A stretch of 64,000 nt of DNA from IMGVR_UViG_3300021959_006017:124001-188000, one strand, 5' to 3'. Positions 6,253 to 56,730 are shown, counted from the stretch's first letter. Numbers and translations: made by a program. Notes: generated from the sequence alone by a model not told the origin.

Positions 6253-6278
6253 AAAATATATTTTTGGAGGGCAAAAAA

Positions 6279-6683
6279 ATGAAATATATTCTTACAGTCA
6301 TAGCTCTGATGGTGGCAAGCACCGCATGGGCAAACCCAAACAACGAAGCGATGAAGTCTTGTTTGGCAGAATACAAATACACATCAGATCAGTTTGACAC
6401 ATTTGATTGGAACAAAGCAGCAGCTTGCCATTCAGATTATCGTGTAGGCGTTACCCAAGCAAAGAATGCAGAACTACGTGATTTCCTAAAGCACAACCCA
6501 CGCTATAGAGTGCCAGGACAAAGTCAGAATCGTTGTTGGGGCAAGCCACGTGAAATGCCGTTTGAAAGTGCATACATCAAACAAACACAAGGCGGCTTTG
6601 AAGCAGGTGTAAGTTACAAAGATAAACTACCAGCAGGTTGTTATGAAAATGGACCATGGGATAATCGCGATGTGGAAAACTAG
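6279..6683 (+). CDS. Secreted hypothetical protein (4 Cys)
   Basis: GGAGGG RBS; signal peptide MKYILTVIALMVASTAWA. Confidence 0.6.
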   Translation: MKYILTVIALMVASTAWANPNNEAMKSCLAEYKYTSDQFDTFDWNKAAACHSDYRVGVTQAKNAELRDFLKHNPRYRVPGQSQNRCWGKPREMPFESAYIKQTQGGFEAGVSYKDKLPAGCYENGPWDNRDVEN

Positions 6684-6828
6684 TATTGTAATGGTGACTT
6701 TCCTTTTCCTAATGCTTTATGGCATGTTTGCATATAGCGGCTCAAGTCAGAGGTATTGGGAAAATGTTGGTCCGACATGGGATAAAATGCTAAATCCTTG
6801 TAGTTACGAAGCATGTAACGGCGATTAA
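6643..6828 (+). CDS. Small membrane-anchored hypothetical protein (start uncertain)
   Basis: ORF with one hydrophobic segment filling the gap. Confidence 0.4.
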   Translation: MKMDHGIIAMWKTSIVMVTFLFLMLYGMFAYSGSSQRYWENVGPTWDKMLNPCSYEACNGD

Positions 6829-6858
6829 CACATACTATAATCTGTACAAAAATTACAT

Positions 6859-6913
6859 TAAATATTAATGTAGCAGAGCGTGAGGGCGTTCTATTACAAG
6901 CGAGGGTAACAAC
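6859..6913 (+). promoter_or_regulatory. TAAATA promoter plus structured 5' leader of the autotransporter-like gene
   Basis: TAAATA at 6859-6864; hairpin TGTAGCAGAGCG/CGTTCTATTACA with TGAGGG loop; GAGGG RBS at 6902-6906. Confidence 0.55.
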
Positions 6914-8812
6914 ATGAAAAGAAAACTTCTAGCAGGGGCCGTTCTGGCCGCTCTACTTTCTACAACGGCACTAGCCGACACATCAAGTATGAACGGCAGT
7001 GTAGCCGGAATGGGCATACTTGAAAACGATTATGTTCGTGCAGGAGTAAATGGCACAGCAGGTACATTTGGTAGCGGAGGCGGAACACGCCCGGGACTAC
7101 AATACGATAGCACAGGCACAGGGACATTTCCAGCAGATAGCGCACAAGGTGATTATCTAACACCAGGATCACCATTTGATGGATTCAGTGTTATGGTAGA
7201 TGGCACTAACTACGCAAACAACAACAGCAGCGGAAATGCTATTGATTATGATTCCAGCGGACTAACAGATGGCACAAACAGTTTAACGTGGCGCGGCAAT
7301 GTGCGAGGTATATTTGATATTACAAACACATACACGCTAGGAACTACAAGCGAGTACATTGATATTACATCAGCTATTACAATGGGTACAGCCGCTGATG
7401 ATGTTTGGTTCTCAAGACACATTGACCCAGATGCTATGCCAGAACCAGGGGACACAAGTGCCACAGACAACGTACTAGGCTACGGTGCTATTCCAGATTC
7501 AAATGTTGCGTTTTCAGAAGCAACTACAAGTCGTTATGCTCTAGGACTATATTCAACAGACTCAAACGTAGATGCTGGTATTACAGGATGGACGCAAGAT
7601 GCTGACAGTTATACTGAAAATGATTTTGATCCTTCATCAAATACAAACACAGGCGACAACACCATTGGACTAAGTTGGCACTGGACAAGTGTAGGTGTTG
7701 GTGATATTCTAACAGCAAGTTATGCATACATCTTTGGACCAAGTGCTTTTGATGCTGCTGACACTGCCGTCACAGGCGGAGCTGGAGGCGGAGCTGACAT
7801 TCTTACAGGCGACTTAGAAGATGTTGGTTCAGCTACTGATGCGGCAGAAGGTACATCTACACCTGTGATTACATACAGCGATCCTGTTGTAGACGCAGAC
7901 TTGCCAGTTCTTACACAAACACAAACAACACACGATGCAAGTGAGACTGCAACTGTACAAACTATTGACAGGGAAACTACAACTATTGTTACAACACCAA
8001 TGGAAATCATTACATACACAGACGGTGTTGAAACAGCAAGAACACCTACAGATAGTGTAGCAGTAACAACTGTAACAGATCCAGGTTCGTTCACAGGACG
8101 CATTGATCAAGTAGCAACTGCACAAGACGTTACAAGTTCTGCACTACGCACACTAAACTTTGATACAGTAAGTGGTGTAGGCATGAACAGCAAAATGAAC
8201 AATGGCATGGGCGGAAGTACAAAAGGTTTCCAAGCAGGTGCTAAGAAAGAACTAGAGAACGGTGCAACTGTTGGACTAGGTGGTGCAAGACTAACTAGCT
8301 CACTTGAAGGCAACGGCGATTCAATCGGTACAGACACAACTGCGGTTGCAGTTAGTGTTGAGCGTAACAATGTTGAACTAAGTGTTCGTCATGCAATGAG
8401 CGACTATGACATTTCACGTACAATCGGTGACTTTGCTAACACAGGCAAAACAAGTGGCACAGACACAGCAGTTAGCCTAATGTACTCACCAGAAGGCGAC
8501 AAAGTACGTCCAGTCATTGGTTACACAAGAGGCAAGCGTACAATGGATGGTTACACTGAAGAAGGTTCGATCCAAAGTGCAAGAACTGTTGCTGACTCAA
8601 GTGAAATGTACGGGTACGCAACTATAGGCGGAACTATTGATCTAGGTGCGCTAAATATTACAGCACTACATCACACAGATGGAGTTAATGATGTTATCGT
8701 AGGCGTTGAAAAAGAAACTGGTAAAGTTACATACAATCTTTCAGCACAGCGTTCAATGACAGACCTCGGAAACACTAACTCAGTGTTTGCTGGCATACAG
8801 ATAAAGTTCTAA
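6914..8812 (+). CDS. Autotransporter-like outer-membrane protein (acidic passenger plus C-terminal beta-barrel)
   Basis: Signal peptide; Thr/Asp/Gly-rich passenger; C-terminal amphipathic strands with RPVIGY...DGYTEEG; terminal Phe (GIQIKF). Confidence 0.7.
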   Translation: MKRKLLAGAVLAALLSTTALADTSSMNGSVAGMGILENDYVRAGVNGTAGTFGSGGGTRPGLQYDSTGTGTFPADSAQGDYLTPGSPFDGFSVMVDGTNYANNNSSGNAIDYDSSGLTDGTNSLTWRGNVRGIFDITNTYTLGTTSEYIDITSAITMGTAADDVWFSRHIDPDAMPEPGDTSATDNVLGYGAIPDSNVAFSEATTSRYALGLYSTDSNVDAGITGWTQDADSYTENDFDPSSNTNTGDNTIGLSWHWTSVGVGDILTASYAYIFGPSAFDAADTAVTGGAGGGADILTGDLEDVGSATDAAEGTSTPVITYSDPVVDADLPVLTQTQTTHDASETATVQTIDRETTTIVTTPMEIITYTDGVETARTPTDSVAVTTVTDPGSFTGRIDQVATAQDVTSSALRTLNFDTVSGVGMNSKMNNGMGGSTKGFQAGAKKELENGATVGLGGARLTSSLEGNGDSIGTDTTAVAVSVERNNVELSVRHAMSDYDISRTIGDFANTGKTSGTDTAVSLMYSPEGDKVRPVIGYTRGKRTMDGYTEEGSIQSARTVADSSEMYGYATIGGTIDLGALNITALHHTDGVNDVIVGVEKETGKVTYNLSAQRSMTDLGNTNSVFAGIQIKF

Positions 8813-8813
8813 T

Positions 8814-9143
8814 ATGGACGGAATAATAAGTCTAGGCCTTGCACTATCTTTACACCTCGGCTTCGAGGGTGAGTACAATAGTATTCACCCTCATTTGCGT
8901 TATACAACTGATAGTTATATAGCAGGGGCATACTACAACTCAGAAAGCAAAATAAGCCCATATGTAGGCAAACGATTTGAATATAACGACTTTGGTGTAG
9001 AACTAGGAGCAGTAGGCAACTATTCAGATGCTGATGTTGCACCATATATACGTGGTACTTACAAGCAGTTTTTTGTAGCACCAGGCATAGAAGGCGATAA
9101 CGTAGGAATCGTTTTAGGTATTGAGCTACCAATCGGCAACTAA
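8814..9143 (+). CDS. Small predicted beta-barrel outer-membrane protein
   Basis: Alternating aromatic/Gly beta-strand pattern (IAGAYYNSE, PYVGKRFE, FGVELGAV). Confidence 0.5.
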   Translation: MDGIISLGLALSLHLGFEGEYNSIHPHLRYTTDSYIAGAYYNSESKISPYVGKRFEYNDFGVELGAVGNYSDADVAPYIRGTYKQFFVAPGIEGDNVGIVLGIELPIGN

Positions 9144-9150
9144 ATATTAC

Positions 9151-9220
9151 TGAGGGCGGATGCTGATTGAGATATCATTGCGTTACCCTCGCTTGTTTCA
9201 AAAGTTAGCATTCGCTCTCA
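9151..9220 (+). ncRNA. Hairpin RNA with loop antisense to the RBS/start of the 6914 gene
   Basis: 16-bp stem 9151-9166/9205-9220 plus 8-bp inner stem; 9182-9196 is the exact reverse complement of 6896-6910; TAAATA at 9141-9146. Confidence 0.7.
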
Positions 9221-9241
9221 ACTTTCCCAGCTAAATACATT

Positions 9242-11299
9242 ATGACTAAGTGGATCACACATTGGACAGTAGCCTTTGTTACGGCTGTAATCATGTTACT
9301 AGTGCATTACGGGGATAGCACCATTGTCCAAACAGCTAGGCTCAAGCAATTTGATCTACTACAAAACACAGATGAGCAGATAGTATCCCAGGATATTGCG
9401 GTAGTCGCTATCGATGAAACAGCTATTGAGAAGTACGGTCAATGGCCCTGGAAGCGAGATGTTATAGCAGACATAGTTTGGAAACTTCGAGAAGCAGGTG
9501 CTGGTATCATTGTGATGCCTATATTGTTTTCCGAGCCAGATCGATTGGGCGGAGATATGCAGTTAGCCGAAGCACTTGTAGGGAACGGCGTAGTTATCGC
9601 CCAAACGGGGACTACATCCGGAGTAAACCGCAATGCTGTACCAAGAGGTGTTGCGAAGATAGGAGATCCATTACCGTTCATGTTTGAATGGCCGGGAATG
9701 TTAGGTCCTATACCTCTGCTAGGGGAGAACGTTGATGGTGTGGGTGTGTTGAACACATTCCCTGAAATCGACGGTGTGGTAAGACGTGTACCTCTTCTTA
9801 TGCGTGTTCGGGATGAAACGTATCCGGCTATAGCAGTGGAAGTAATAAGAGTTGCAACAGCAGCACCTTCATATCAAGTTAAGGCTAACGAAGGTGGTAT
9901 TGAAGCTGTAAGAGTTCCTGGATATCCTACTGTGCGAACAGATCCAAATGCACAGATATGGTTGCGTTGGAACAAACAGTTTGAAACTGTAAGTGTTGCA
10001 AATGACGATCTTAACATTGTAGAAGGCAAGACAGTTATACTTGGTATAACAGCAGAAGGTATTGGTGCAACTGTTGGTACACCACAAGGCACACAATACA
10101 GTTATGTTCCTGCCGCGATTACACTACAAACTGTTATAGACGGTGATCAAATAGAACGTCCTTACTGGGCATTACTAGCAGAACTAGCAGCTACGGCAGC
10201 ACTTGGTTTATTATTAGTATTGCTTGCACGTTTCACTCCATATTATGTTGTTGGCGCAGCTATTGTGTTGTTGGGTGGAGGATTAGTATATGGTGCTTTA
10301 TATGCTTGGCAAAACTATTTGTATTTGCTAGACATAACAATGCCAATAGCAACTGTGTTACTTGTAGGTTTACATGCAGTATTCAATAGATTTGTTGCAG
10401 AGTTCTTTGAAAAGCAAAAGATTAAAAAGCAGTTCGAAGGATATGCATCTCCAGCAGTGGTTAAGATACTACAAGAAAATCCAGCACTAATCAAGAACGG
10501 TACTGAGCGTGATATTAGTATTGTGTTTTCAGACTTGCGTGGCTTTACTCCGCTAGGTGAATCGTTTGGCAAAGATGTACAAGGCTTAACACGTATTATG
10601 AACGGTTATATGGATGCTATTACAGAACCTGTGCTTGATGCAGACGGAATGATTATTAAGTATATTGGCGATGCAAGTATGCACATACACAATGCACCAG
10701 TTGATGACGACGATCATCCTAATACCGCAGTTCGTGTAGGGTTACAAATGCTACGAGCAGTGGAGAAGTTTAATGAAGATATTATCATTCCTGAAGGAAG
10801 ACCTCCCGTGGGTATGGGGGCTGGCATCAATACTGGACTTGGATTCTTGGGAGAGATGGGAAGCACCAAAAGACACTCATACGATGTCCTCGGAGATGCA
10901 GTCAGCACAGCCGCACGTATCGAATCAAAATGTAAAGAGTACGGGTGCTTGTTGCTCGTTGGAGGAGACACGGTAGAGCAATGTGATCAAACAGAGTTTT
11001 TCTTTGTTAAAATAGATAGTCTTGTTGCTAAAGGTAAGACAGATGCAGTTGACATTTATACAGTACTAGATAAACCTAAACCACACTATAAATCAAGCAG
11101 ACGTAGACACGACGGCATGCACAAGATGTATCAAGAACGTAGATGGGATGATGCAATAGAAGAGTGCCACAAACTTACTGGACAGTTTGAAGGACGTTTA
11201 GATGGTTACTACGAAATGTGGATTGATCGTTGTAATGAAATGCGCCACAAAGACTTACCAGATGATTGGGATGGCCGTTATATCGCAACTACCAAGTAG
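9242..11299 (+). CDS. CHASE2-domain class III adenylate cyclase
   Basis: CHASE2 motifs (IDE.AIEKYGQWPW.R, DGVVRRVPL), three TM helices, cyclase motifs FSDLRGFT, KYIGDA, G.GINTG and YDVLGDAV..AARIES. Confidence 0.92.
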   Translation: MTKWITHWTVAFVTAVIMLLVHYGDSTIVQTARLKQFDLLQNTDEQIVSQDIAVVAIDETAIEKYGQWPWKRDVIADIVWKLREAGAGIIVMPILFSEPDRLGGDMQLAEALVGNGVVIAQTGTTSGVNRNAVPRGVAKIGDPLPFMFEWPGMLGPIPLLGENVDGVGVLNTFPEIDGVVRRVPLLMRVRDETYPAIAVEVIRVATAAPSYQVKANEGGIEAVRVPGYPTVRTDPNAQIWLRWNKQFETVSVANDDLNIVEGKTVILGITAEGIGATVGTPQGTQYSYVPAAITLQTVIDGDQIERPYWALLAELAATAALGLLLVLLARFTPYYVVGAAIVLLGGGLVYGALYAWQNYLYLLDITMPIATVLLVGLHAVFNRFVAEFFEKQKIKKQFEGYASPAVVKILQENPALIKNGTERDISIVFSDLRGFTPLGESFGKDVQGLTRIMNGYMDAITEPVLDADGMIIKYIGDASMHIHNAPVDDDDHPNTAVRVGLQMLRAVEKFNEDIIIPEGRPPVGMGAGINTGLGFLGEMGSTKRHSYDVLGDAVSTAARIESKCKEYGCLLLVGGDTVEQCDQTEFFFVKIDSLVAKGKTDAVDIYTVLDKPKPHYKSSRRRHDGMHKMYQERRWDDAIEECHKLTGQFEGRLDGYYEMWIDRCNEMRHKDLPDDWDGRYIATTK

Positions 11300-15321: not shown

Positions 15322-15336
15322 TACTAAAGTTTACGG

Positions 15337-15392
15337 TTGACAAACCCTCTTTTAGACACTATACTATATGTATAGACAATGAGGAGAGGGTT
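15337..15392 (+). promoter_or_regulatory. Sigma70-like promoter whose spacer is complementary to the downstream RBS
   Basis: TTGACA (15337)-N17-TATACT; AACCCTCTTTT (15343-15353) pairs with AGGAGAGGGTT (15382-15392). Confidence 0.65.
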
Positions 15393-24598: not shown

Positions 24599-24687
24599 GG
24601 AGGATGGGCAGGACGGTAATGCAGCGGATTGCTAATCCGTACTACGTGAATAGCGTAGAGTGGGTTCGACTCCCACATCCTCCGCCA
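24599..24687 (+). tRNA. tRNA-Ser(GCT)
   Basis: Acceptor GGAGGAT/ATCCTCC, anticodon arm GCGGA-TT-GCT-AA-TCCGT, long variable arm, GTTCGA, encoded CCA. Confidence 0.93.
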
Positions 24688-24690
24688 CTT

Positions 24691-24764
24691 GCGGCATTGG
24701 TGTAGTGGTAACATGCGAGCCTTCCAAGCTCTTGTCACCGGTTCGAATCCGGTATGCCGCTCCA
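24691..24764 (+). tRNA. tRNA-Gly(TCC)
   Basis: Acceptor GCGGCAT/ATGCCGC, loop CT-TCC-AA, U73, CCA. Confidence 0.93.
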
Positions 24765-24776
24765 TAAGGAGAAGAT

Positions 24777-24971
24777 ATGTTTTTTGGAATAGCTCTTATC
24801 GCAGGATTGTTCGTCTACGATAATCAAGAGTTTTTTAATACAGTAGAACAAAACATTGAGGATGGTTTTACTTGGGAGTATGTTGGTAAACAAGATCCAG
24901 CAGGACAACCAGCTGTAACCGTCCTTGACGGCCAAAACAACGAAGTCATTTATTTCAAAATGACTAAGTAA
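24777..24971 (+). CDS. Small membrane-anchored protein inside tRNA cluster 1
   Basis: AAGGAG RBS; hydrophobic N-terminus. Confidence 0.6.
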   Translation: MFFGIALIAGLFVYDNQEFFNTVEQNIEDGFTWEYVGKQDPAGQPAVTVLDGQNNEVIYFKMTK

Positions 24972-24976
24972 AATAC

Positions 24977-25052
24977 GCTGGTTTAGCTCAGTTGGTAGAG
25001 CAGGGGTTTTGTAAACCTCAGGTCGGGAGTTCGAGTCTCTCAACCAGCACCA
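24977..25052 (+). tRNA. tRNA-Thr(TGT)
   Basis: Acceptor GCTGGTT/AACCAGC, loop TT-TGT-AA, CCA. Confidence 0.93.
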
Positions 25053-25056
25053 TAAT

Positions 25057-25141
<85 letters not shown>

Positions 25142-25164
25142 ACATCGAGTACACACCACAAACC

Positions 25165-25192
25165 AAATAGGGCCATAAGGCCCTATTTTTTT
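25165..25192 (+). terminator. Intrinsic terminator after tRNA cluster 1
   Basis: AAATAGGGCC-ATAA-GGCCCTATTT followed by further Ts. Confidence 0.85.
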
Positions 25193-25309
25193 GACTAAAT
25201 ACATATGAGACAAGACAGTAATAAGAACAAGACGCAGTAGAAATAACAACCCTCCCGCCCTAATATTAGATACAAACTTCCTCAAATATAAACACTAACA
25301 AGGAAAAAC

Positions 25310-25510
25310 ATGAGTAATCAAGGAAAAGTAAAATGGTTCGATGCCACTAAAGGTTTTGGATTTATCGCTACCGAAGACAAAGATATCTTCGTACACATTT
25401 CAGCAGTAGAAGCCGCAGGCTTACGACAGTTGAATGAAGGCGATACTGTACGGTTTGAAACACAGGATGGTCCAAAAGGTCCTTCTGCTATAAACTTAAC
25501 AGTCAACTAG
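25310..25510 (+). CDS. cspA: Cold-shock domain protein
   Basis: GKVKWF...KGFGFI and DIFVHISA. Confidence 0.95.
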   Translation: MSNQGKVKWFDATKGFGFIATEDKDIFVHISAVEAAGLRQLNEGDTVRFETQDGPKGPSAINLTVN

Positions 25511-25539
25511 TAGAAATACAAATAATTGTTAAAAAGTGG

Positions 25540-25568
25540 TTGACAAACCGGAATAAATAAAGTATAGT
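25540..25568 (+). promoter_or_regulatory. Sigma70-like promoter of the leader-peptide/tRNA cluster 2 unit
   Basis: TTGACA (25540-25545)-N17-TATAGT (25563-25568); the spacer also contains a TAAATA. Confidence 0.75.
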
Positions 25569-25598
25569 ATATACATACTAAGAAATAAGGATTTTAAC

Positions 25599-25661
25599 AT
25601 GTTCAAGACTAACACAACAAATATTACTTGTTGGCCATCACGAAAGTGGGGTATGTCTTGA
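25599..25661 (+). CDS. Putative attenuator leader peptide MFKTNTTNITCWPSRKWGMS
   Basis: AAGGA RBS at 25587-25591; codons 11-14 are TGT TGG CCA TCA; the 3' end overlaps the antiterminator arm. Confidence 0.75.
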   Translation: MFKTNTTNITCWPSRKWGMS

Positions 25662-25726
25662 CGTGACTTTTTAAAAAGTTATTTTAGACAAAGCCCCCAA
25701 GCAGCAATGTAAGGGGGCTTTTTTTT
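25648..25726 (+). terminator. Attenuator: mutually exclusive antiterminator and intrinsic terminator
   Basis: Terminator AAGCCCCC (25691-25698)/GGGGGCTT (25713-25720) plus T run to 25726. Antiterminator GGGGT-A-TGTCT (25648-25658) pairs with AGACA-AA-GCCCC (25686-25697). Confidence 0.8.
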
Positions 25727-25796
25727 ATGGAGAAAGGAAAAATGACTGATAGTGAATATTGGCGATGGATGAAATCGCAAGTTGAATAAAGTTTTT

Positions 25797-25870
25797 GTCG
25801 GTGAAGTGTTATGGTAGCACGGCGGTCTCCAAAACCGCAAGCCGGGGTTCGACTCCCTGCACCGATGCCA
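25797..25870 (+). tRNA. tRNA-Trp(CCA)
   Basis: Acceptor GTCGGTG/CACCGAT, GCGGT-CT-CCA-AA-ACCGC, G73, CCA. Confidence 0.92.
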
Positions 25871-25948
25871 CGGAGTGTAGCTTAGTCTGGCTAAAGCGCC
25901 TGGTTTGGGACCAGGAGATCGTAGGTTCGAATCCTACCATTCCGACCA
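25871..25948 (+). tRNA. tRNA-Pro(TGG)
   Basis: Acceptor CGGAGTG/CATTCCG, anticodon loop with TGG in CCTGG-TT-TGG-GA-CCAGG, CCA; abuts tRNA-Trp with no spacer. Confidence 0.93.
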
Positions 25949-25950
25949 AT

Positions 25951-26040
25951 GGAGAGTTGGCAGAGCGGTTTAATGCACTGGTCTTGAAAACCAGCGAAGG
26001 TGAAAGCCTTCCGAGAGTTCGAATCTCTCACTCTCCGCCA
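25951..26040 (+). tRNA. tRNA-Ser(TGA)
   Basis: Acceptor GGAGAGT/ACTCTCC, CTGGT-CT-TGA-AA-ACCAG, long variable arm, CCA. Confidence 0.94.
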
Positions 26041-26044
26041 TTAT

Positions 26045-26119
26045 GTGAGCGTGGCAGAAAGGTTATGCAACGGATTGCAAATCCGTTTTATGCAAGTTCG
26101 AATCTTGTCGCTCACTCCA
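26045..26119 (+). tRNA. tRNA-Cys(GCA)
   Basis: Acceptor GTGAGCG/CGCTCAC, ACGGA-TT-GCA-AA-TCCGT, U73, CCA. Confidence 0.92.
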
Positions 26120-26181: not shown

Positions 26182-26700
26182 ATGTCAGATATTTGGTTAA
26201 TCAGCGACACACACTTCAACCACAAAGGTATCCTTACATTTAACGATTATGCAGGTAAGCCGACTAGACAGTTTTCTAGTGTAGACGAAATGAACCAATG
26301 CATGTTAGATAACTGGAACGACACAGTTAAAGACGGTGATACAGTTATCCACTGTGGCGATGTTCTTTTTGGTGAAAACAAAGTTACTTGGTTAGAAAAC
26401 AACTTTATGAAGTTGCCAGGCAAGAAAAGACTTGTATTAGGCAACCACGATAATGTAAAGTTTTTAGCACCGTTCTTTAAGGACATCCAGTTATGGTTAG
26501 AACTGCCTGGTAGTGTTATTGCAACTCACACTCCGTTGCACCCTACTACACTTGCAGAAAAGCATAGATGGGGTGATGCACCGATACTGAACGTACACGG
26601 ACATATTCACAGTAATCCTTCACCAGAAGGACCTTACAAGTGTGTTTGTGTAGAGCAAATAGGGTTTAAGCCCATAAACATTGATGAAGTTAGGGGTTGA
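26182..26700 (+). CDS. Calcineurin-like metallophosphoesterase
   Basis: SDTHF.H, GD, GNHD, H.P and HGHIH motifs. Confidence 0.9.
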   Translation: MSDIWLISDTHFNHKGILTFNDYAGKPTRQFSSVDEMNQCMLDNWNDTVKDGDTVIHCGDVLFGENKVTWLENNFMKLPGKKRLVLGNHDNVKFLAPFFKDIQLWLELPGSVIATHTPLHPTTLAEKHRWGDAPILNVHGHIHSNPSPEGPYKCVCVEQIGFKPINIDEVRG

Positions 26701-26725
26701 CAAATCCCTAACTTTTTAGTATAAT
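26687..26725 (+). promoter_or_regulatory. Terminator hairpin carrying the -35 box of the ligase promoter
   Basis: AAGTTAGGGGTT-GACA-AATCCCTAACTT-TTT; TTGACA (26697)-N17-TATAAT (26720). Confidence 0.7.
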
Positions 26726-26758
26726 ATATACATAATGAGGCATTAGAAAGAGGCACAC

Positions 26759-29673: not shown

Positions 29674-29683
29674 TAAATACAGT

Positions 29684-30565
29684 ATGACACAAATTAATAC
29701 ATCTGACCTTGACCGTGCAATCCAAGATTTGGGCAAATCCATTGGCGATATAGTTAATCGCGCCCTTACTGTAGACGACATGCGTATGCAGTCTTTAACT
29801 TCTGTAGAGTTTAATGCAGAAGGTGAAAACAGTATATATGGCAAAGGACTACAATGGAGAGGCGCAGGTCCTACAAAGCAACTTGTTTATAGAGCAAATC
29901 CAGATCGAATTTGGTCTAGCGAAAGCATAGACATAAACGCAGGTGCTAGTTATATGATTGCTAATACTCCAGTTATTAGTCAGTCAGAACTAGGCAGTAG
30001 TATTAGAAGTTCAAGTCTTGTTAAAGTTGGAACACTTGATAACTTAAAAACAAGCGGCAACTTATCTATAGACGGATATATTCATTATAATAGCAATAGT
30101 GAAGCACTAGGTATTGGAACAGATGCACCAAATGGTAAACTTAGTATTGCAACACTAGACAGTGAGTTTATTGTTGATACAGAATCGAGAGCAGTTAAAC
30201 TTGGAACTTGGACAACCGACGATCTAAAAATTGTAACAGACGATACAACTAGACTTACTATTCGTGCAAACGGAAATATTGATTTAGGTGATTCTGAAGG
30301 AACAGATTCTAAAGTAAGTGTACACGGACGTTTGGGCGTTGGCGTAAACAATATAGAAGAAGGTGTAAGTATAAGCACTAGTGGACCAGTTAAGTTTGAA
30401 AACAAAAAGTTTATGAACGGAACAGGAATACCAGACTCTGGATCTTTTAGACAAGGTGATATTGTCTGGAACGAGAATCCTATTCCAACTGGGTATGTAG
30501 GATGGATTTGTGTTAGAACAGGAACTCCTGGAGAGTGGAAGCCATTTGGACAAATAGGAAAGTAA
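29684..30565 (+). CDS. Tail-fibre-like virion protein, paralogue 1
   Basis: SSL.KVGTL.NL repeats, LGIGT.AP, C-terminal GDIVWN..P...GYVGW.C...GTPGEWKPFG; TAAATA at 29674. Confidence 0.6.
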   Translation: MTQINTSDLDRAIQDLGKSIGDIVNRALTVDDMRMQSLTSVEFNAEGENSIYGKGLQWRGAGPTKQLVYRANPDRIWSSESIDINAGASYMIANTPVISQSELGSSIRSSSLVKVGTLDNLKTSGNLSIDGYIHYNSNSEALGIGTDAPNGKLSIATLDSEFIVDTESRAVKLGTWTTDDLKIVTDDTTRLTIRANGNIDLGDSEGTDSKVSVHGRLGVGVNNIEEGVSISTSGPVKFENKKFMNGTGIPDSGSFRQGDIVWNENPIPTGYVGWICVRTGTPGEWKPFGQIGK

Positions 30566-31756: not shown

Positions 31757-32038
31757 ATGAACAAAACAAAAAAAGAAGTAAACCGTTGGCGACAAGCAGC
31801 CACCGTATTGGCTTTTACAGCACTAGGCTTAATAGCATTTTCATATTGGATAGGCACAGACACTTGGATAAAGTGTGTTATGGTATTAGTTACATCTGTA
31901 TTTTTTGCGACAGGCATAATATGGTGGTATTGGGTACTTAATCAAATATCACAGTTCGCAAAATATATCGCAAGTCTTAAAGACGTTATCCGCGAACTCA
32001 AAGAAGATCTCAAAAATATTAGAAAAGGTTTAGACTGA
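31757..32038 (+). CDS. 2-TM membrane protein with C-terminal coiled coil
   Basis: TATAAATA at 31724-31731, AGGAG RBS, two hydrophobic helices. Confidence 0.6.
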   Translation: MNKTKKEVNRWRQAATVLAFTALGLIAFSYWIGTDTWIKCVMVLVTSVFFATGIIWWYWVLNQISQFAKYIASLKDVIRELKEDLKNIRKGLD

Positions 32039-34057
32039 AGTTAAGTCAACTGGCACAGCATAGAACGTGCAACCTGTTATTGAGAAGGTTGCATTGCCGT
32101 CGGTGTTTTCTGCATTACTAAAACTAAAACTTTTAGTAGATCCTGAAGTAGTAATCAACCAAGAGTGTTCACCTCTAGATGTTCCACTAACAGAAATACC
32201 ACCAGTGCTATTAAAAGCAAACAAACTATCTTTTGATGCAGTACCGTCTACACTCCAAGTAGAGCTAAAGGTGCCGCCACTTGAGTTATGTGAGTAGTTA
32301 AAACTAGATGTTTCATGGAATATTTGCATATGTGTTCCTGGAGTATCTAGTGTAACACTAAAACTACCCGAAGTTCTAGTTATAAGAGAACCTTCTGGTA
32401 CAGCACTAATACCAGTAAGTGCTGATCCGTCAATAGCAGGAAGTGCTCCTGATAAGTTAGCCGCAGGTATTACACTGTTTACGCCATCAACAAGAAGTGT
32501 ACTATCATCGCCGTACACGCTACCTTCTACATCACCATCAAGATTAGCATCTATAACACCTAACTCTTTTATAACCATAGTTCCCGACTCGTTAGGTATT
32601 TCGATTGTAGCATCTTGTATTGGTTCAATAGCGAACAGTGTCGTTTCAAAACTGTCATTATTAGTACCTTCAAATCTAATAACATCAGAGAATGTTGTAG
32701 GCACACTCACGGTTGCAAAAGTATTGTATACACTTAGTTGTGGTGAGCCTGATCCTACCATAACTTGCAAGTTAGGCGATCCAGTGTCCGAGTTAACAGC
32801 CAGTTCGTATCCTGATGTTAGATATTTTTTAACTTCAAATCTTGGTGTGTTACCAGTATCTTGTATTAAAAAAGGATCTGCACTAGTTAGTGTTAAAGAT
32901 GTTGTGTCAACATCGCCAACAATTTTTCCAGTTACACTGTCGACTAATAGTCCGCTGTCATCTGCAAACACACTACCATTAATGTCACCATCTACATTAC
33001 CAGTAACGTTGCCTGTTAGTGCAGCATTAAATGTTCCGTTAATTGTAGTTGTGTTGCCAACTTTACCAATAGTAACATTGCCAGTAGTTGCACCTGTGCC
33101 AATTTCTACTGTGCCAGTTGCAGCGCCATTAATGCCAACGCCAGCAGTTGAAGTAATATTAATACCACTATCACTTACTGTTACATCACCTGATGATGCG
33201 TCACCTAATGATACTGTGCCGCTTGTGCCTCTGTAGATATTTAAGTTAGCACTGTCTCTACCTTGTACTGTAGTAGTAACCACTTCTATGTTGTCAACAT
33301 CGCCGACAACTTTGCCATTTACACTGTCTACTAATACTGTACTATCGTCTGCAAATACTGACCCTATTATATCAACTGTTGCTGTGCCCGATGGTCTCCA
33401 AATACCTGATTGATAAGTTAAAACTCGGCCTTCGGCAGCACCGTCTGTTTCTACATCTAGTAGTTCTGCAAGTTGTGTTCTTGGAAAATATTCACCTGTA
33501 GCAACACCGCCACTTGAGTATGAGCTAAATCCTGTTCCGTCTACACTTGCTGTAAGTTCGTCATCGCTATAAAGTGCAAAAGTAGTACTAGTAAGAATAT
33601 CTGCATAGTATTCGTTACCATTAAGTTGTGTCATTCCTACAACATCTGTAATAGTTACAGGTGTACCTTCAGAGAATGAATGTGCTGCACTAGTTGTGAT
33701 TACAACTGGATTTGTTTGTGTAGCATTTAATATTGCTTTGCTAGAACCACCAACGGTAGCCGTAATAATTAGTTCTGAATCACTGTTTCTTACAACACTA
33801 ATGTTTGAACCAGCTCGTATTTCAATGCCAGTATAGTTTGAGTTTACATCATTTAAACGTAACTCGGTTGTTCCAACTGGAACAGATAGTTGATAATCAA
33901 CATCTATTTCAAAACTATCTCCTCCTTCACTAGGATTAAACGCTACACCGTCACTTCTAGTAATAGTTAGTGTATCGCCTATATCGTCAGCAGTAAGTGT
34001 TACTCCGTCTGGTTGGAGAAGTATTTTTCGAAATGTATCTACGTATGCTACGCCCAT
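32030..34057 (-). CDS. Tail-fibre-like structural protein with FCCH-like beta domain and GSVFADDS repeats
   Basis: ATQTNPVVITT..AH....G..V.I..V.GM..LNG; three GSV(F/Y).DDS..LVD units; minus-strand TAAATA at 34089-34094. Confidence 0.6.
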   Translation of the reverse strand: MGVAYVDTFRKILLQPDGVTLTADDIGDTLTITRSDGVAFNPSEGGDSFEIDVDYQLSVPVGTTELRLNDVNSNYTGIEIRAGSNISVVRNSDSELIITATVGGSSKAILNATQTNPVVITTSAAHSFSEGTPVTITDVVGMTQLNGNEYYADILTSTTFALYSDDELTASVDGTGFSSYSSGGVATGEYFPRTQLAELLDVETDGAAEGRVLTYQSGIWRPSGTATVDIIGSVFADDSTVLVDSVNGKVVGDVDNIEVVTTTVQGRDSANLNIYRGTSGTVSLGDASSGDVTVSDSGINITSTAGVGINGAATGTVEIGTGATTGNVTIGKVGNTTTINGTFNAALTGNVTGNVDGDINGSVFADDSGLLVDSVTGKIVGDVDTTSLTLTSADPFLIQDTGNTPRFEVKKYLTSGYELAVNSDTGSPNLQVMVGSGSPQLSVYNTFATVSVPTTFSDVIRFEGTNNDSFETTLFAIEPIQDATIEIPNESGTMVIKELGVIDANLDGDVEGSVYGDDSTLLVDGVNSVIPAANLSGALPAIDGSALTGISAVPEGSLITRTSGSFSVTLDTPGTHMQIFHETSSFNYSHNSSGGTFSSTWSVDGTASKDSLFAFNSTGGISVSGTSRGEHSWLITTSGSTKSFSFSNAENTDGNATFSITGCTFYAVPVDLTSV

Positions 34058-34107
34058 CAAGTTTTCCAATAAAAATGTTTTCTTAACGTATTTATTTAAA
34101 TATAGCT

Positions 34108-34698
34108 ATGTTAGTTATCGGCAATGGCGAAAGCCGCAGTAAAGTAGACCTGGAAAAAATTCAAGATAAAAAGATCGGATGTAATGCTATCCTTAGAGAT
34201 ACTAAGGTAGATCATTTAGTATGTGTAGATAAACGTATGCTAAAAGAAGCACTTAACAGCTCTTACCATAAAAATACAAAAGTATATACACGCAAAGATT
34301 GGTGGGTACAACATAGACTTGAAAAGAACATAAAACCAGTTCCAGAACTGCCTTATGTGAGTAATGACCGTTGGGATTTGCCTTGGCATTGGGGAGCAGG
34401 ACCATACGCTGTATTATTGGCATGTAACCTAGCAGAAGACATAAAACTTGTAGGTTTCGATTTGTACAGTAAAGACGGTAAACTAAACAACATGTATAAA
34501 GATACAGAAAACTATGGTATGTCACATAAACGTGCAATAGATCCCAGGTATTGGATACATCAAATAGGAGTACTAGTTGACCTTTATAGCGATAAAAACT
34601 TTACTGTATATGCTGAAGAAGATTGGAAGTTGCCTACATTCTGGAATAAACCTAATCTAAAGGTTGACAAGATAAGTAACATATACTATAATACATAG
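34108..34698 (+). CDS. Glycosyltransferase/MAF-like Rossmann protein
   Basis: VIGNGESR, GCNA..RD, L.CVD, I.LVGFDL. Confidence 0.55.
   Translation: MLVIGNGESRSKVDLEKIQDKKIGCNAILRDTKVDHLVCVDKRMLKEALNSSYHKNTKVYTRKDWWVQHRLEKNIKPVPELPYVSNDRWDLPWHWGAGPYAVLLACNLAEDIKLVGFDLYSKDGKLNNMYKDTENYGMSHKRAIDPRYWIHQIGVLVDLYSDKNFTVYAEEDWKLPTFWNKPNLKVDKISNIYYNT
34664..34692 (+). promoter_or_regulatory. Sigma70-like promoter of queD
   Basis: TTGACA (34664)-N17-TATAAT (34687), perfect consensus. Confidence 0.8.
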
Positions 34699-38317: not shown

Positions 38318-41300
38318 ATGGCAAGACAAGATATTGATATTGGTGTATCAGGTAACGACGGAACCGGTGATAGTATTCGTGAATCCTTTCGTAAGGTAAA
38401 CGAAAACTTTCAAGAAATATATGCGGTTTTTGGGATCGGTGGACAGATTAGTTTTACTGATCTAAGTGACACTCCAGACACATATGAAGGTAACGAAAAT
38501 AAAGTTCCTTTAGTTAAGTCAGACGGTAGTGGTCTTAACTTACTTGAACTAGCATCTGACAACAGCCTAGACGGCTCACCTGATACTATTGGATTTGATT
38601 TTAGTGTAGATGGTAAAGTTATTCTTAAACAGCTTGTTTCAAGAGTTGCAAACGATCCGGAACCAACACTAGCTGGTCCACTAGACGCTGCTACACAGCC
38701 TATTGCAAACGTTACAGTTAGTCAAGCAGCAATTGATACTTTTAACTCTGTGCATGGTACAGACTTAACTATTAGTGACCTTGTTATTAACAAGAGTTTT
38801 GCAGACAGAAACTACCAAGAAAAGAAAGTTGCAGGCGGCGGATTACGTCTAGGTGATGAGCCTACAGATACTAGCGAGTATGTATTATCAACTGACTCTA
38901 TAAGTTTAGGAAACCTACAAGTTCCTGGTCATGGATTAAGTGATGCATATATTGGTGCTCCATTTTTCTTTAATAGTACAGGTACTGATCCATTTGGTGT
39001 TACTAGCGGAGGTACATATTACTTAGGTATTCCAGACGGTGACGAACTTTCATTATACGAAAGTGAAGAAGATGCACTTACAGGCACAGGCAGAATACTT
39101 CTAGCCGGTGGCTCAGGAACATTCACTATTACAGACGGTGCATATGACGACGAACTAGAAGGTTTTTGGTTATCAAACGTTGCTGTTCCACGAAAAAGCC
39201 TTGTAAGACGTCAAGGGGACTCAATGACAGGTCCTTTAAATCTATCAGATCATCCAGGCGAACTTGCTGGTAAAGGCTTGCCAAATGGTCCTGATGATTT
39301 ACAAGCAGCAACAAAACTTTATGTAGATAATGCTGCCGCTTCAAGTACAGTTAACTTGTATGTAAGTACAGCAGGTAGCGACAGTCAAGAGTTTACGCCA
39401 GACGGAAAAGAAGGACGTAACCCAGCATATGCATATAGAACTGTTAATGCTGCATGTCAAAAAGCAGAAGAAATAATTTTATCAGCTCCGCCTGAACCAG
39501 GTCCATATCAGCAAACAATGACTTTTGCCAATGGCGAAGACAATGGTACAGTTTTAACATCAGGTATTACTAGCACTATTGTCGGTCGTGCAGCAGCAAG
39601 AGCACTTATTTTAGAAAATAAAGAATGGGTAGCAAAAGAAGTTACCGGTTATATTGATGCTACATATCCAGAGTTTAGTGAAAGTTATGACACTGCTATA
39701 TGCGAAAGAGATGTTCAGCTTATTCTTGAAGCAGTAAGTTTAGATATTTTACTAGGTAATAACGCAAACTATCTATCACGTTACTCAGGACTACAATATT
39801 ATTCTAACGCAAGTGGACAGGTTGCTATTGGTGTTCAAAAAGCATACACTATTGCAGGTATTGAATATGCAAAAACACTAGTTAGAGATTATGTTCTTAC
39901 AAACACAGCACCTCCTACATCATATCAAAGTCGTGTAGAACAGTACATTGAGCCTGCTATTATTCCAGATAGCGCAGCAGACTCAGCTGCTGAAGCAAAG
40001 TTTGACATTGTTATAGATGTTATTAATAATGGTCCTCTTAATGCTCCTAGCATTGTTGACGGTTCAACAACTTATAAAATTAATATCTCTAATGGTAACA
40101 ACGGTTTTATAGATCAAGCTAATCCAGAAAATACAGACATTATTCCAGGTAAAGTTATTAGAGGTAAAAACTCTGGTGCTATTGGACGTATCATTGACTA
40201 CAAGCACGAGTCAGGTGATAGGGCTGTTAGTGTGCCAGAGACGGACGAAACTGAAGTTCAACTTCTTATTCCAAGAGAGTTTGAAGTAGGTGAAGAATTA
40301 GAATATGGAAACTATGTTGTAAGTACACAGATTAGTGTTAGAATCGAAAGCGGTATCTACGAAGAAGATTTACCTATTAGAGTTCCAGCTAACGTGTCTA
40401 TCAAAGGCGACGAGTTTAGACGAGTTATTATACGTCCGAAGGATCGTGTATCGCAATCACGTTGGGCAAATACATTCTTCTATCGTGATGCAGAGTTTGA
40501 TGGACTAGTATTAGGAAAGTCATCAATAGAAACGTTAAACTATGAACCTTCTATTGATCCACTAAGAACCGCAGGTACTTATACTATTTCTAATAATGAT
40601 TATACGTCTAGCGAACTTGGTAAAGATGCTGAGTTTGAAATAACAGTAAGTGCAAGTGGTGCTATTAACGATATTACTATAACAAATGAAGGTCAAGATT
40701 GGCAAGCAGGCGAAGTTATAACTGTTACTGATGCTGTGCTAGGCGGTGGCGGCGGTGCCGAATATGTATTCCGGGTCGCAACAGTACCAAATGGTATTAA
40801 GTACATTAACCCATTAACTGACGAAGTAGATGGTTACTTTGGTTATCATTACTTGCTTAAACCAGATAATGTAAAAAACATAGGCGCTGGTTATACAAAC
40901 GTTGGCAACTGGGATACAGCAGCTTTAGTCTTAGATGATAACAGAGAGTTTATACAAGAACAAGTTGTAAACTATGTAGAAACAACTTATCCTGCACTCA
41001 TCGGTTCTCCAAACTACAGCAGAACAAAATGTTCTCGAGATACAGGACTTATTGTTGATGCACTAGTTAAGGATCTACGCACCGGCGGCAACGAGTTTGC
41101 ACTAGAAGCACAAGGTGAATACTATGCAGGTGCAGTGAAAGCTGGTACAGAAACAGAAACTGTTGCAGGTATAGATCATATCTATACTATTGCAAATAAA
41201 CTTATTCTAGGTGAAGCACCGACTACACTTTATGGTCCAAGTGGAGCATCACCTATACGCCCAGGTAATAGTGGTGAAAACTTAGAATATGATTATGATT

Positions 41301-44300
41301 TATTCAATGGAAGTGCAGAACCCGATGAATGGGTTGCTGATAACGTATATCGTGTTGGTAATGTTGTCTACTATACATTTGCTGGCGTTGACAGATATTA
41401 TCAATGTAAGATCGAAAACCGCTCAGGCAATACTTTTGACTCAGCAGAAATCAATGCTTACTGGAGTGAAATCGACGGTATAGATACTGTTATTGATAAT
41501 CTAATAGATACTATTACTTTTGCATTTGATTCGAACTATAACCCACCGTTGAGAAACGACGAGATGGATGTGTTCTTAATGAATGATGCTACTATCTTAC
41601 GTAACATTACAGGACAAGGACACGGCGGCTTCCAAATGGTGCTTGACCCAGAAGGACAAATTCTAACTAAATCACCATACTGTCAGACTGGTACAGGTTT
41701 TGCAAAGAGTCTTAACAAACAAGTATTCCATGGAGGATTGTTTGTTGACGCATTTGTTGGTAACTCCGCAGTACAAGTTACAGAACGTGTAGATGGAGAT
41801 CCGTTTAGACTTAGAGTACAAAGTTTGGGTAGCCAATCTGATCCTCAAGGATTGTTTGTAAGACGTCCGCAAACACCTTGTGCGTTCTATATAGACGGCA
41901 GACGTTTCCAAGTTAATGCTGTAACACTTTATGATCCAGACTTTGGTACAGCAGAACTTATACTTGATAGAAGTTCTAATGATAGTAATGGATTCCAAGG
42001 TTTAACATCAGAACTTGCAACAGGGGTTGATTTAGATTCAATCGGCGATTTTAGTTTTAATGAAGAAAAATGCGAAAGAGATTCTAACTACATTGTTGAA
42101 GGTGTTGCACTTGACACAGTATTAGGTACTAACTACTTTGCTGTATACAATGGTCTTGCATATCATAGAGGAAATATAGCAGAAGTAGTTATTGATGACC
42201 AGCTTGCACAAACTACAGGTGCTTATGAAGCAGGTAGAGACAGAACACTACTTATTACAGAAGTTGCAGCAGACACTGATGTAGTTAACAGAGTTACAGC
42301 AGCTTATAATGAAGTAAATGATATAATCACTAACGGTCCTACATCTGCAGATGCAGTAACATTTACTGATACTGGTGTTACTGATAAAACCTATGCTAGA
42401 ACACTATTGCAAGCAAACCGAGATTTTATTGCAAGTGAAATCACAGACTTTATTACTGCAAACTATCCAAGTTTAACATACGACAGTGCAAAATGCGAAA
42501 GAGATGTAAAATACATTGTAGACGCTGTAAGTTTTGACATCCAATATCAAACTAACTTAGGTTCTAAACTAGCAGCAAGATCTTATTTTGACGATGGTGT
42601 TGCTGTAAAACCAACAGAACAAAGAGCTCCAACAGTTGCAGCATATCAAGAACTTGCAACTATAATGCAGCAGGTCGTCCAAGAAACATATGCAGGACAA
42701 ACTCTAACAGGTAATCCTGCAACAGCAACAGAAGGACTAGAAGCAGCAGGCTTAGTAGAAGTTATTTATGATGTTATTGATGAAGATTCATTAGTTAACT
42801 TACCTGCAGATATTACACCTGACAACACTTGGACAGATGTAAAGTATATTTCTGCTTATGAAGCTATATTAACTACACAAGCAACTATAGTAAATAAGAT
42901 AATCCAAAGCATAGATGCTCCATTACCTATTACACTACAAACAGCAGGTAACAGATCAATCCTAGGTAACGACTTTACACAGATTAACGACCAAGGATAC
43001 GGACTCGTTGCAGTCAACGGTGCTCTATCAGAAATGGTTAGTATGTTTACATACTATTGCTGGACATCATACTATGCTAAGAATGGTTCAGAGATTAGAT
43101 CACTGACAGGTTCTTCATGTTATGGTGAATACGGGCTTGTTGCTGAAGGTTCAGATCCAAATGAAATTCCAGACAGTGTATTACTTGCACAAGATATGGT
43201 TGAAAGTGCAAGAGTATTTGATGCTGATGTTGTACTTTATCTAACAGATAGGGTTAGACTACAAGCAGGAGATCAAATCGAACAGGTAACTTCTCTAGCA
43301 ACAGGTACGATTGCTGTAACTACAGCAGACTTAGATGATAGTACAGTTGAAGACGGTCCACAGACACCAGGAAGTAAAATAATATATCTAACTGGTGTAG
43401 AAGGAGCGTTTGATACAACAGGAGAACTACAGATTACAGGTCCTATAACAGGAGACTCAACTGTTACTGCACTCGGACCAAACAGTGTCCCTACAGATGT
43501 TGATTCAACAGGTTATGGTAATAACAAAGAAAACTTGTTCTGCTATGCATACGACTTTAAAGTAAATCCATCAAATAGATCAGAGTTTGATGTATATCAT
43601 CCAAGTGTTCCTACTCTTGCTAGATACGAAGCAGCAAGTTCTAACCTTGCAGGTCACACTGTAGGTGAGTACAAAGATGTTGGTGTAGGTGGTAATATTA
43701 CTCCGTTATCGAGCACATTTGCAGACGTAGGTGCTCTTGATGGATTGTTTGACGTACAAAAAACTATTGCTTATGGATATACTGCTACTATTTCAAACGG
43801 TGGCGAGGCATACACTGTAGGTGACCAATGGGTAGTAAGTGGTGCAGACTTAGGAGGTGTATCTCCTGATAATGATTGTACTATTACTGTTACTGAAGTA
43901 GACGAAGGAACTGGCTCAGGGCTTGGTGTTATATCAGAAGTTAGGCTGAGCGGCGATATTTGGCAAGAAACAAGCACTCCTATGTATGACGGTAGAGTTT
44001 TTAAACTTAACTTTAGTACAAGTGATGCACAGTTTAGTACAAGCGGGTTACTTGCAGATGTACCATGGGGTACACTTATCCAATATAGAAGAAACCAAGC
44101 ACATATTATAAGCGACTTAGCAAGACCAGATGTGTTAAGTATTCGTCCATCAACTGCTGTTGTATTTGATGAAAACCCAACACAGATTTATCGTTCAATC
44201 AGCTTCCTAAACAGTGATAGTATAGGAGTTGAACTACCACAAGGTACACTGCAAGCAGGATTTGATGAAGGTTATGATTATATCAGGATGCTTGTTAATA

Positions 44301-47122: not shown

Positions 47123-47254
47123 TGGATAAACCTAAAGTAGATAAACTAGTTAAGACAAACCAGATGAAAGCTAGTAACGATACAAAAAATCCGCAGGAGC
47201 GTCAAGCGGTCCTGCAAAATAACATTCTTAGAATAAGAGTACAAGGGGCACCAA

Positions 47255-47884: not shown

Positions 47885-47916
47885 CGATAAATACAGTAAG
47901 TAACAGGATTTAGAGA

Positions 47917-50547: not shown

Positions 50548-50572
50548 TAAATATATTAAATAGGAAAAACAA

Positions 50573-52432: not shown

Positions 52433-52441
52433 GGATTAATA

Positions 52442-53140: not shown

Positions 53141-53173
53141 TTCCGATAAATACTACTGTAGAAGGAATCACGT

Positions 53174-56704: not shown

Positions 56705-56730
56705 ATATGTGTAAGGATATGGAATAAACA

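Follow-up and report, generated by a model that had tools for sequence, protein, structure and literature searches.

Bacterial and phage mRNAs for which regulation by pairing of their own 5′ and 3′ ends is well supported are very few, comprising icaR, hok, hbs and T7 gene 1.2. In the hok/sok system of plasmid R1, the 3′ end of the mRNA pairs with the 5′ end and the completed mRNA is inert, local hairpins forming first; the contact is made between fbi and tac, not directly with the Shine-Dalgarno sequence, and trimming of the 3′ end activates the mRNA. A sequence near the 3′ end of the T7 gene 1.1/1.2 mRNA, which also has an RNase III hairpin, is said from the 1981 work of Saito and Richardson to pair with an upstream ribosome-binding site (RBS) and to depress translation; to our knowledge no covarying family has been described for it. 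In Staphylococcus aureus, an anti-Shine-Dalgarno sequence in the 3′ untranslated region (UTR) of icaR prevents translation from being initiated and gives rise to an RNase III site (PMC3868564). Anti-Shine-Dalgarno-like sequences located hundreds of nucleotides (nt) downstream also pair with RBSs and repress in vivo (PMC12697547), and in Bacillus subtilis pairing of the RBS with distant, pyrimidine-rich anti-Shine-Dalgarno sequences lowers translation and stability, and 5′/3′-UTR contacts, as in hbs, tune mRNA decay (PMC12697547, PMC5737220). Here we describe a stem-loop, HP2, that lies at the 3′ end of an autotransporter operon in an uncultured T4-like marine myophage. The window analyzed comprises 64,000 nt of IMGVR_UViG_3300021959_006017 (124001-188000), and positions are counted from its first letter. 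One strand of HP2 is complementary to the leader of the operon, and we propose, with a probability of roughly 60%, that pairing between the two is a two-state RNA switch that most likely acts in cis, the completed mRNA silencing its own translation.

The features of the operon that bear on this proposal are the following (aa, amino acids; bp, base pairs).

6859-6864, + strand: TAAATA, a T4-type late-promoter-like motif, with a transcript start predicted near 6870
6870-6897, + strand: HP1, a 5′-terminal leader hairpin with a GAGG loop (-11.9 kcal/mol, z -2.67)
6896-6917, + strand: target segment, with the 15-nt exact match (6896-6910), a 3-nt internal loop and AUGA (6914-6917)
6914-8812, + strand: 632-aa autotransporter-like gene, assigned from an AlphaFold2 (AF2) model and Foldseek
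8814-9143, + strand: gene for a 109-aa PagP-like small outer-membrane barrel (phrog_3600, E 2.6e-6)
9141-9146, + strand: TAAATA, 4 nt before the HP2 base; possible second late promoter
9151-9220, + strand: stem-loop HP2, with outer, inner and apical stems of 17, 7 and 3 bp
9175-9219, + strand: anti-leader strand of HP2, with the anti-AUG (9175-9178), the anti-Shine-Dalgarno core (9182-9196) and the distal 3′ arm (about 9213-9219)

The HP2-leader pairing appears to resemble the icaR 5′-3′ UTR pairing in how it would work, not as a member of the same sequence family. As in icaR, an anti-Shine-Dalgarno sequence located past the last stop codon, on the same strand, can pair with the Shine-Dalgarno sequence of its own mRNA, and here this arrangement has been kept in evolution. 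Whereas icaR uses a 7-nt UCCCCUG motif, the pairing predicted here has a core of 14-20 nt and takes in the whole leader over 25-40 bp; the antisense strand also sits in a hairpin that competes for it through a leader-like 5′ arm, and the setting is a phage late operon of two cistrons, known from sequence alone. The likeness to hok is the pairing of the 3′ and 5′ ends of a full-length mRNA, predicted here in 7/7 folds. Unlike hok, however, the operon has as its products the 632-aa autotransporter and the 109-aa PagP-like barrel, with no small toxin gene and no mok-like frame, and no activating 3′ trimming step is known for the phage locus; we also found at the locus no conserved - strand open reading frame (ORF) or Sok-like antisense promoter. 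With T7 gene 1.2 the locus shares a phage mRNA in which a downstream sequence is able to pair with an upstream RBS, but in T7 the inhibition is lifted or modulated when a canonical RNase III site is cut, the span is hundreds of nt and not thousands, and there is no sequence relationship to the element described here. Anti-Shine-Dalgarno sequences of the B. subtilis type are usually selected against in genes, whereas this one is positively maintained, extended and placed in a dedicated hairpin. MicF, MicC and SdhX likewise use an RNA seed that occludes the RBS of an outer-membrane protein mRNA, but those RNAs have their own 3′ terminator, are encoded apart from their targets and pair imperfectly with several of them, whereas the sole extended target here is the leader of the element's own operon and no U-tract is present.

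The original prediction for this locus had noted a 15-nt perfect complement between the RBS of the 632-aa gene and a hairpin 2.3 kb downstream, and this was confirmed. The segment ACAAGCGAGGGTAAC (6896-6910), which spans the Shine-Dalgarno GAGGG (6902-6906; leader Shine-Dalgarno sequence GAGGGUAAC) 7 nt ahead of the ATG at 6914, has its exact reverse complement at 9182-9196, and only two sites in the window match with two or fewer mismatches (0.13 expected). The additional complement of TCAT (9175-9178) to ATGA (6914-6917) was also recovered, and through it the match extends to 22 nt at 86% (repeat pair I23). The window has 44 exact inverted pairs of 12 nt or more whose members are no farther than 6 kb apart; the 15-mer is the longest among them, and because so many such pairs exist it is by itself only suggestive. 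The significance of the leader match comes from its conservation in relatives.

The target had been described as the RBS; it is wider than this. Duplex prediction gives -46.1 kcal/mol for the leader and HP2 of the window, and complementarity amounts to 25-40 bp over nearly the whole leader of about 44 nt. The pairing is predicted in three blocks, namely the perfect core, the extreme 3′ arm with the 5′ part of the leader including HP1 (in the window, about 9213-9219 with 6876-6881), and often the start codon, which is set off by an internal loop of 2-3 nt. The other 40 gene leaders in the window have no comparable downstream partner, which makes the autotransporter unique among the 41 genes, and the idea that this phage uses such pairing throughout was rejected. 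Extended matches to the element are lacking in all other window genes, and GAGGGTAA is present once. In exact 15-mer and 17-mer scans of IMG/VR, matches beyond the contig itself and the family of the homologous locus L099 were unrelated chance or ordinary RBS matches.

HP2 begins 8 nt past the stop codon of the last cistron and precedes the next promoter-like motif. The minimum free energy (MFE) fold of the + strand across 9144-9241 reaches -32.6 kcal/mol (z -5.16, with 0/200 shuffles as good), and the - strand of the hairpin region has no fold above background (z -0.74). The coordinates of the predicted hairpin hold, as do the TAAATA at 9141-9146 and the enclosed region of 19 nt, but the MFE structure has an outer stem of 17 bp and not 16 (9151-9167 with 9204-9220, including G-U) and an inner stem of 7 bp and not 8 (9168-9174 with 9194-9200). 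Within the 19 nt, an apical stem of 3 bp (9180-9182 with 9190-9192) presents the 7-nt loop UUACCCU (9183-9189). The position of the hairpin also needed correction: it does not directly follow the autotransporter gene but comes after a second cistron (109 aa, 8814-9143), and so it marks the end of the operon and not of that gene. An intrinsic terminator was ruled out, since a scan called no site at 9151-9230 and the stem is followed by ACUUUCCC with no U-tract; a U-tract is likewise missing behind the stem in most sequence types. Rfam 15 returned nothing but 8 tRNAs across the window at gathering thresholds, and nothing up to E = 5 in 6800-9300. Two small ORFs, one of 24 codons inside HP2 (9160-9234, + strand) and one of 12 codons behind a mirrored Shine-Dalgarno sequence (9178-9140, - strand), were rejected because they are not conserved in relatives.

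At the other end of the operon, HP1 starts at the site predicted from TAAATA at 6859-6864, and when the leader is folded alone the Shine-Dalgarno sequence and the AUG are left single-stranded. Other leader types have analogous small hairpins with different stems, and in nearly all aligned homologous leaders TAAATA sits 38-55 nt before the ATG. The late-promoter activity of TAAATA and the transcript ends are predicted from such motifs. As a separate observation, genes of this module share an unusual RBS, GAGGG(C/T)-7 nt-ATG (2459, 3746, 6267 and 6902), and GAGGGC occurs again at 6882, where it is unpaired in the HP1 loop, and at 9152, in the 5′ base of HP2; these extra copies could serve as a Shine-Dalgarno-like decoy or a ribosome standby site.

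Relatives were collected through protein-guided scans of IMG/VR and JGI metagenomes, 80 of about 230 metagenomic relatives being taken in. At least about 74 distinct homologous loci were obtained, and about 25 of these, which come from many marine and estuarine samples and represent no fewer than 10 sequence types, carry the element; their proteins are 56-100% identical in amino acids to the window protein. The hairpin is located about 40 nt past the stop codon, or 345-369 nt past it where the 109-aa cistron intervenes (156 nt in one locus, L087). Each hairpin contains a perfect complement of 9-20 nt to its own Shine-Dalgarno region (13-20 nt in most types), compared with 6-8 nt in coding-sequence and same-strand controls, and the matched sequences vary by type, as in CCATAACGAGGGTAAC, TCCGAAGCGAGGGTAC, TCTGTCAACTTAGTGAGGGT, TTCAGTGAGGGTGACA and GTTTATTTGGTGAG. 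In every sequence type the anti-Shine-Dalgarno sequence is in a 7-nt loop closed by a stem of 3-6 bp, and the element invariably occupies the 3′ end of the autotransporter operon in the same orientation, after the coupled second cistron where there is one. TAAATA is found 3-7 nt before HP2 (spacings read by eye) as an exact motif in about 11 of 19 sequence types and with one mismatch in the others (TAAGTA, TAAATG, TAACTA), and TAAATAC-N4-5-ATG comes after HP2 in most types. In the window this downstream context consists of two features.

9232-9237, + strand: TAAATA, ending 4 nt short of the next gene's ATG; putative late promoter abutting the start codon
9242-11299, + strand: CHASE2-nucleotide cyclase gene (Pfam CHASE2 and Guanylate_cyc), outside the element

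Elsewhere the gene after the hairpin varies, being the cyclase, other late genes or an early-promoter region, which argues that the hairpin travels with the autotransporter operon. A covariance model of the hairpins, which scores the HP2 of the window at 61.3 bits, found HP2 only beside autotransporter genes and found none in Methylophilales phage Melnitz, in Pelagibacter phage HTVC008M or in loci having the 109-aa gene only. An element tied to the 109-aa gene was rejected on this last result. HP2 as a leader of the cyclase was also rejected, since other genes follow HP2 too and HP2 is missing where the cyclase lacks an autotransporter neighbour. More distant relatives, which lack HP2, have ordinary terminator hairpins at the same position (L088, L135, L081 and L107). 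A bacterial origin was rejected because both genomic homologues (Pseudotabrizicola and a metagenome-assembled genome contig) have ordinary terminators and no leader match.

The original prediction had left to related phages the question of whether the complementarity is maintained. It is kept in about 25 of the homologous loci, in at least 10 types, with compensatory and wobble changes, and covariation of loop and target was found. Predicted duplex energies average -43.9 kcal/mol for cognate and -32.9 kcal/mol for non-cognate partners, and the cognate partner is the best one for 9/11 type representatives. Measured against windows of their own coding sequence, the duplexes of element loci have z from -4.6 to -12.4, whereas nearly all others fall between 0 and -3.6; eight non-element loci reach z of -4.0 to -5.5, but their duplexes are weak (-19 to -29 kcal/mol) and those inspected showed no element. 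In an alignment-free, ungapped register anchored on the invariant GAGG/CCUC, 75.5% of cells at the ten upstream positions are paired, versus 58.2 ± 3.2% after permutation of partners (maximum 69.5% in 2000 permutations). Most positions of this register show several Watson-Crick pair types, and at one position three close relatives trace a path through a wobble, from C-G (L099) by way of U:G (L095) to U-A (L097).

The stability of the pairing is strand-specific. Because of G-U pairs, the + strand duplex is the more stable in 18/25 loci (p = 6e-4), and the stability of HP2 itself favours the + strand across loci (p = 0.02). When leader and element are folded together, 7 to 34 kcal/mol is gained over the separate folds in 25/25 loci. 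The full-length MFE folds, of 2.0-2.35 kb, prefer a panhandle in 7/7 lineages, with 24-39 leader nt paired with the last 110 nt; in that of the window, 6876-6910 pairs with 9182-9219. The stems of HP2 covary as well. This was tested on a hand-registered structure laid over a sequence-only MAFFT alignment with shuffle and slide controls, and 76.2% of cells were paired versus 61.6 ± 1.5 in shuffles, with a covariation score of 0.418 versus 0.211 in shuffles (0/500 as high) and 0.10-0.20 with partners slid. RNAalifold on the plain MAFFT alignment gave a weak consensus only.

These observations suggest the following switch, in which leader and element would both lie in one transcript. The 3′ arm of HP2 has two alternative partners, because its own 5′ arm and the leader are both complementary to it. 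In the ON state HP1 and HP2 would each fold locally, leaving the Shine-Dalgarno sequence and the AUG single-stranded and exposing the anti-Shine-Dalgarno sequence only as a 7-nt loop. In the OFF state the 3′ arm would leave the 5′ arm and pair with the leader, forming an interrupted duplex of 25-40 bp with a perfect core of 14-20 bp that would open HP1 and bury the RBS and the AUG. Blocked initiation on the autotransporter gene would then also block the PagP-like cistron through coupling, and the long duplex is a plausible RNase III substrate. Since the antisense strand would be transcribed last, about 2.3 kb after the RBS, translation may take place mainly while the mRNA is being made, ribosomes loading during synthesis and the finished mRNA shutting off. 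Such self-silencing would cap the output of the outer-membrane protein in late infection. Between the two readings offered by the original prediction, the 3′-to-5′ fold-back is favoured because the element keeps one orientation and one place, the operon's 3′ end, follows the coupled cistron and forms the panhandle in 7/7 folds; the MicF-like, free-standing small RNA is the weaker reading, there being no U-tract and an exact TAAATA in only about 11/19 types.

Several points weigh against a self-silencing switch. HP2 is very stable (-32.6 kcal/mol) and could be kinetically trapped in its closed form, with no strand exchange. The TAAATA located just before HP2 in about 60% of types makes a separate transcript possible, which favours action in trans. 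The presence of the element is patchy on the protein tree, with 9 changes. Locus L096 (1058-3412) has nearly the same autotransporter protein and 3′ hairpin as L093, but its leader and first ~12 codons come from another lineage (L171-like), so that the hairpin no longer matches the leader; judging from these sequences, L096 is a recent natural recombinant, and because it keeps HP2 behind a foreign leader, the match can be dispensed with in the short term. As the loci are related, the permutation and Wilcoxon tests treat them as more independent than they are, and the number of distinct types, together with the wobble intermediates, is a stronger argument than these statistics.

The points on a separate transcript lead to the main rival, which we regard as possible, although improbable, and in which HP2 is part of a separate RNA that pairs in trans with the leaders of other autotransporter mRNAs, starting from the UUACCCU loop. 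Such an RNA could be the 5′ end of the late transcript of the downstream gene, given the TAAATA 3-7 nt before HP2, or a processed 3′UTR fragment, and it could act in a MicF-like or RNAIII-like manner or as mRNA-mRNA crosstalk. An anti-Shine-Dalgarno sequence in a 7-nt loop on a stem of 3-6 bp, present in every type, is a typical design for antisense nucleation, and the exact TAAATA ahead of HP2 in about 11/19 types parallels the layout of promoter and HP1 at the leader. Covariation fits trans pairing equally well, and cis and trans action are unresolved even for icaR (PMC3868564). However, no U-tract terminator delimits a small RNA, the upstream TAAATA is degenerate in about 8/19 types, and in the loci searched HP2 is confined to the 3′ end of the autotransporter operon, with a constant orientation. 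The lack of an extended match in any other window gene, with the single occurrence of GAGGGTAA, also speaks against trans targets. In a more specific form of this idea, which we consider unlikely, HP2 would in addition head the mRNA of the CHASE2 cyclase as an antisense leader and silence the autotransporter mRNA in trans. If this were true, an mRNA-mRNA circuit among phage late genes would couple a nucleotide-signalling enzyme to a surface protein, and HP2-leader strand exchange would set the ratio of cyclase to autotransporter products.

It is still less probable that HP2 is chiefly a 3′-end structure (an exonuclease barrier, a processing site or an insulator of late units) and that the match is a by-product of an inverted duplication of the leader. 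Ordinary terminator hairpins do occupy exactly this position in HP2-less relatives and bacterial homologues, HP2 does lie between the operon stop and the next late promoter, and the outer stem alone would be enough for 3′ protection. A by-product should nevertheless decay, yet most of the at least 10 diverged types retain a perfect core of 13-20 nt, changes are seen on both sides with wobble intermediates, and the pairing reaches HP1 and the AUG; repeated fresh duplications would not recreate the same three-part hairpin. A feature of the DNA, finally, is very improbable. In that case the imperfect inverted repeats of about 40 bp would be the ends of a mobile or invertible cassette, of the terminal inverted repeat (TIR), mobile insertion cassette (MIC) or invertase type, or a recombination or cruciform site. 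The absence of the autotransporter cassette from Melnitz and HTVC008M, the variable gene order relative to the PagP-like gene and the frequent recombination to which the protein tree and L096 point are all in line with it, and the likeness of the arms would also be preserved if crossing-over took place within the repeats. But the arms diverge among relatives and stay complementary, where protein-binding ends would keep their sequence; owing to G-U pairs, duplex and hairpin are both better on the + strand; none of the ~25 loci has the inverted orientation; and the DNA that Melnitz lacks is not delimited by the repeats, as it also takes in 6253-6860 and begins about 600 nt to the left of the leader repeat arm. 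There is, further, a single copy per genome window, and the left arm is a working Shine-Dalgarno sequence and start codon. Because the arms diverge but complement each other, in one orientation and a single copy, without bounding the extra DNA, the element is probably not a DNA-level repeat, and a T4 PeSL-type cassette, invertible DNA and a TIR were rejected on the same evidence. The self-silencing switch in cis remains our preferred reading.

The autotransporter label given to the 632-aa gene by the original prediction was borne out at the level of fold. The AF2 model (mean predicted local distance difference test score, pLDDT, 78) comprises a signal peptide, a beta passenger domain, a helix (399-412) and a 12-strand barrel (419-630), and its top Foldseek matches are the translocators of NalP, EstA, BrkA, EspP and AIDA-I (NalP template modelling score, TM, 0.65 on the target). 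The protein has no Pfam or PHROG match, and since there is no Pfam match its membership is by fold alone, on which it models as a type Va autotransporter. The sole clear cellular homologue is from Pseudotabrizicola formosa (Rhodobacterales; L184, NZ_PJOM01000005.1), at 45% identity. The 109-aa gene starts 1 nt past the autotransporter stop and has no Shine-Dalgarno sequence of its own, and for these reasons it is probably translationally coupled to the autotransporter. In other relatives, such as L025/L163 (5571-7818), the small barrel gene is upstream and not downstream of the autotransporter.

The window contains a tRNA cluster, sigma-70-like early promoters and TAAATA motifs ahead of structural genes. 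Its CHASE2-cyclase is 62% identical to the homologue of Melnitz and 47% identical to that of HTVC008M, and in the comparison with GenBank phages only the cyclase ties the window to these two; blastn with the region and tblastn with the autotransporter gave no match among GenBank phages. In Melnitz and HTVC008M the cyclase comes directly after a curli-type module (CsgF, CsgG, curlin-repeat and FecR proteins), whereas in the window three extra ORFs lie between the module and the cyclase: a 139-aa ORF, the 632-aa gene and the 109-aa gene. The last two (6914-9143) are both missing from Melnitz and HTVC008M. The curli-type module has already been described and is still unexplained (PMC7029224); the same survey of pelagimyophages covers the curli genes but not the autotransporter gene or the element, and late-promoter prediction failed there (PMC7029224). 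We found no published description of the HP2 element.

Some further observations concern the window at large. The source contigs Ga0222715_10000005 (343 kb) and IMGVR_UViG_3300021959_006017 (237 kb) far exceed the genomes of Melnitz and HTVC008M (141-147 kb), and the long source contig may be a larger relative or an assembly concatemer. Eight tRNA genes are clustered on the + strand at 24599-26116. Repeat family D13, a block of GGTTGACAAA...TATA(C/A)TAT located at 15335-15374, 25538-25577 and 26695-26734, forms strong sigma-70-type early promoters. On the + strand, TAAATA is found just ahead of structural and other genes at 758, 2447, 6859, 47888, 50548, 50557, 53147 and 56702. In three genes it is only 4-5 nt before the ATG (9232-9244, 29674-29686 and 34097-34110), and if TAAATA is a late promoter, the late mRNAs of these genes would have little or no leader. 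Very large ORFs rich in repeats (2934, 876, 619, 1176 and 503 aa) occupy 38318-58242 and, on the - strand, 32030-34069; GDxxG-type internal repeat units are common to them, including a - strand ORF, and they are probably fibre or adhesin proteins.

Mechanisms of this kind, in which a 3′ sequence pairs with its own RBS, are already known from T7 gene 1.2, icaR and the hok fold-back. The new features here are that the family is conserved and covaries among uncultured T4-like marine phages, that an entire leader is matched by antisense across more than 2 kb, and, as far as the sequences indicate, the packaging of the antisense strand in a competitor hairpin and the control of a phage-borne autotransporter operon. 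Since the family is a natural one, evolution has already run the compensatory-mutation experiment, and the matched and mismatched pairs of leader and 3′ end that it offers, L096 being a natural mismatch, can serve the study of anti-Shine-Dalgarno pairing over more than 2 kb. The alignments also provide TAAATA as a candidate late-promoter motif where late-promoter prediction was reported to fail (PMC7029224). For the phages themselves, this analysis indicates that T4-like marine phages related to the pelagimyophages and Melnitz appear to tightly limit an acquired outer-membrane autotransporter, located beside their curli/cyclase module.

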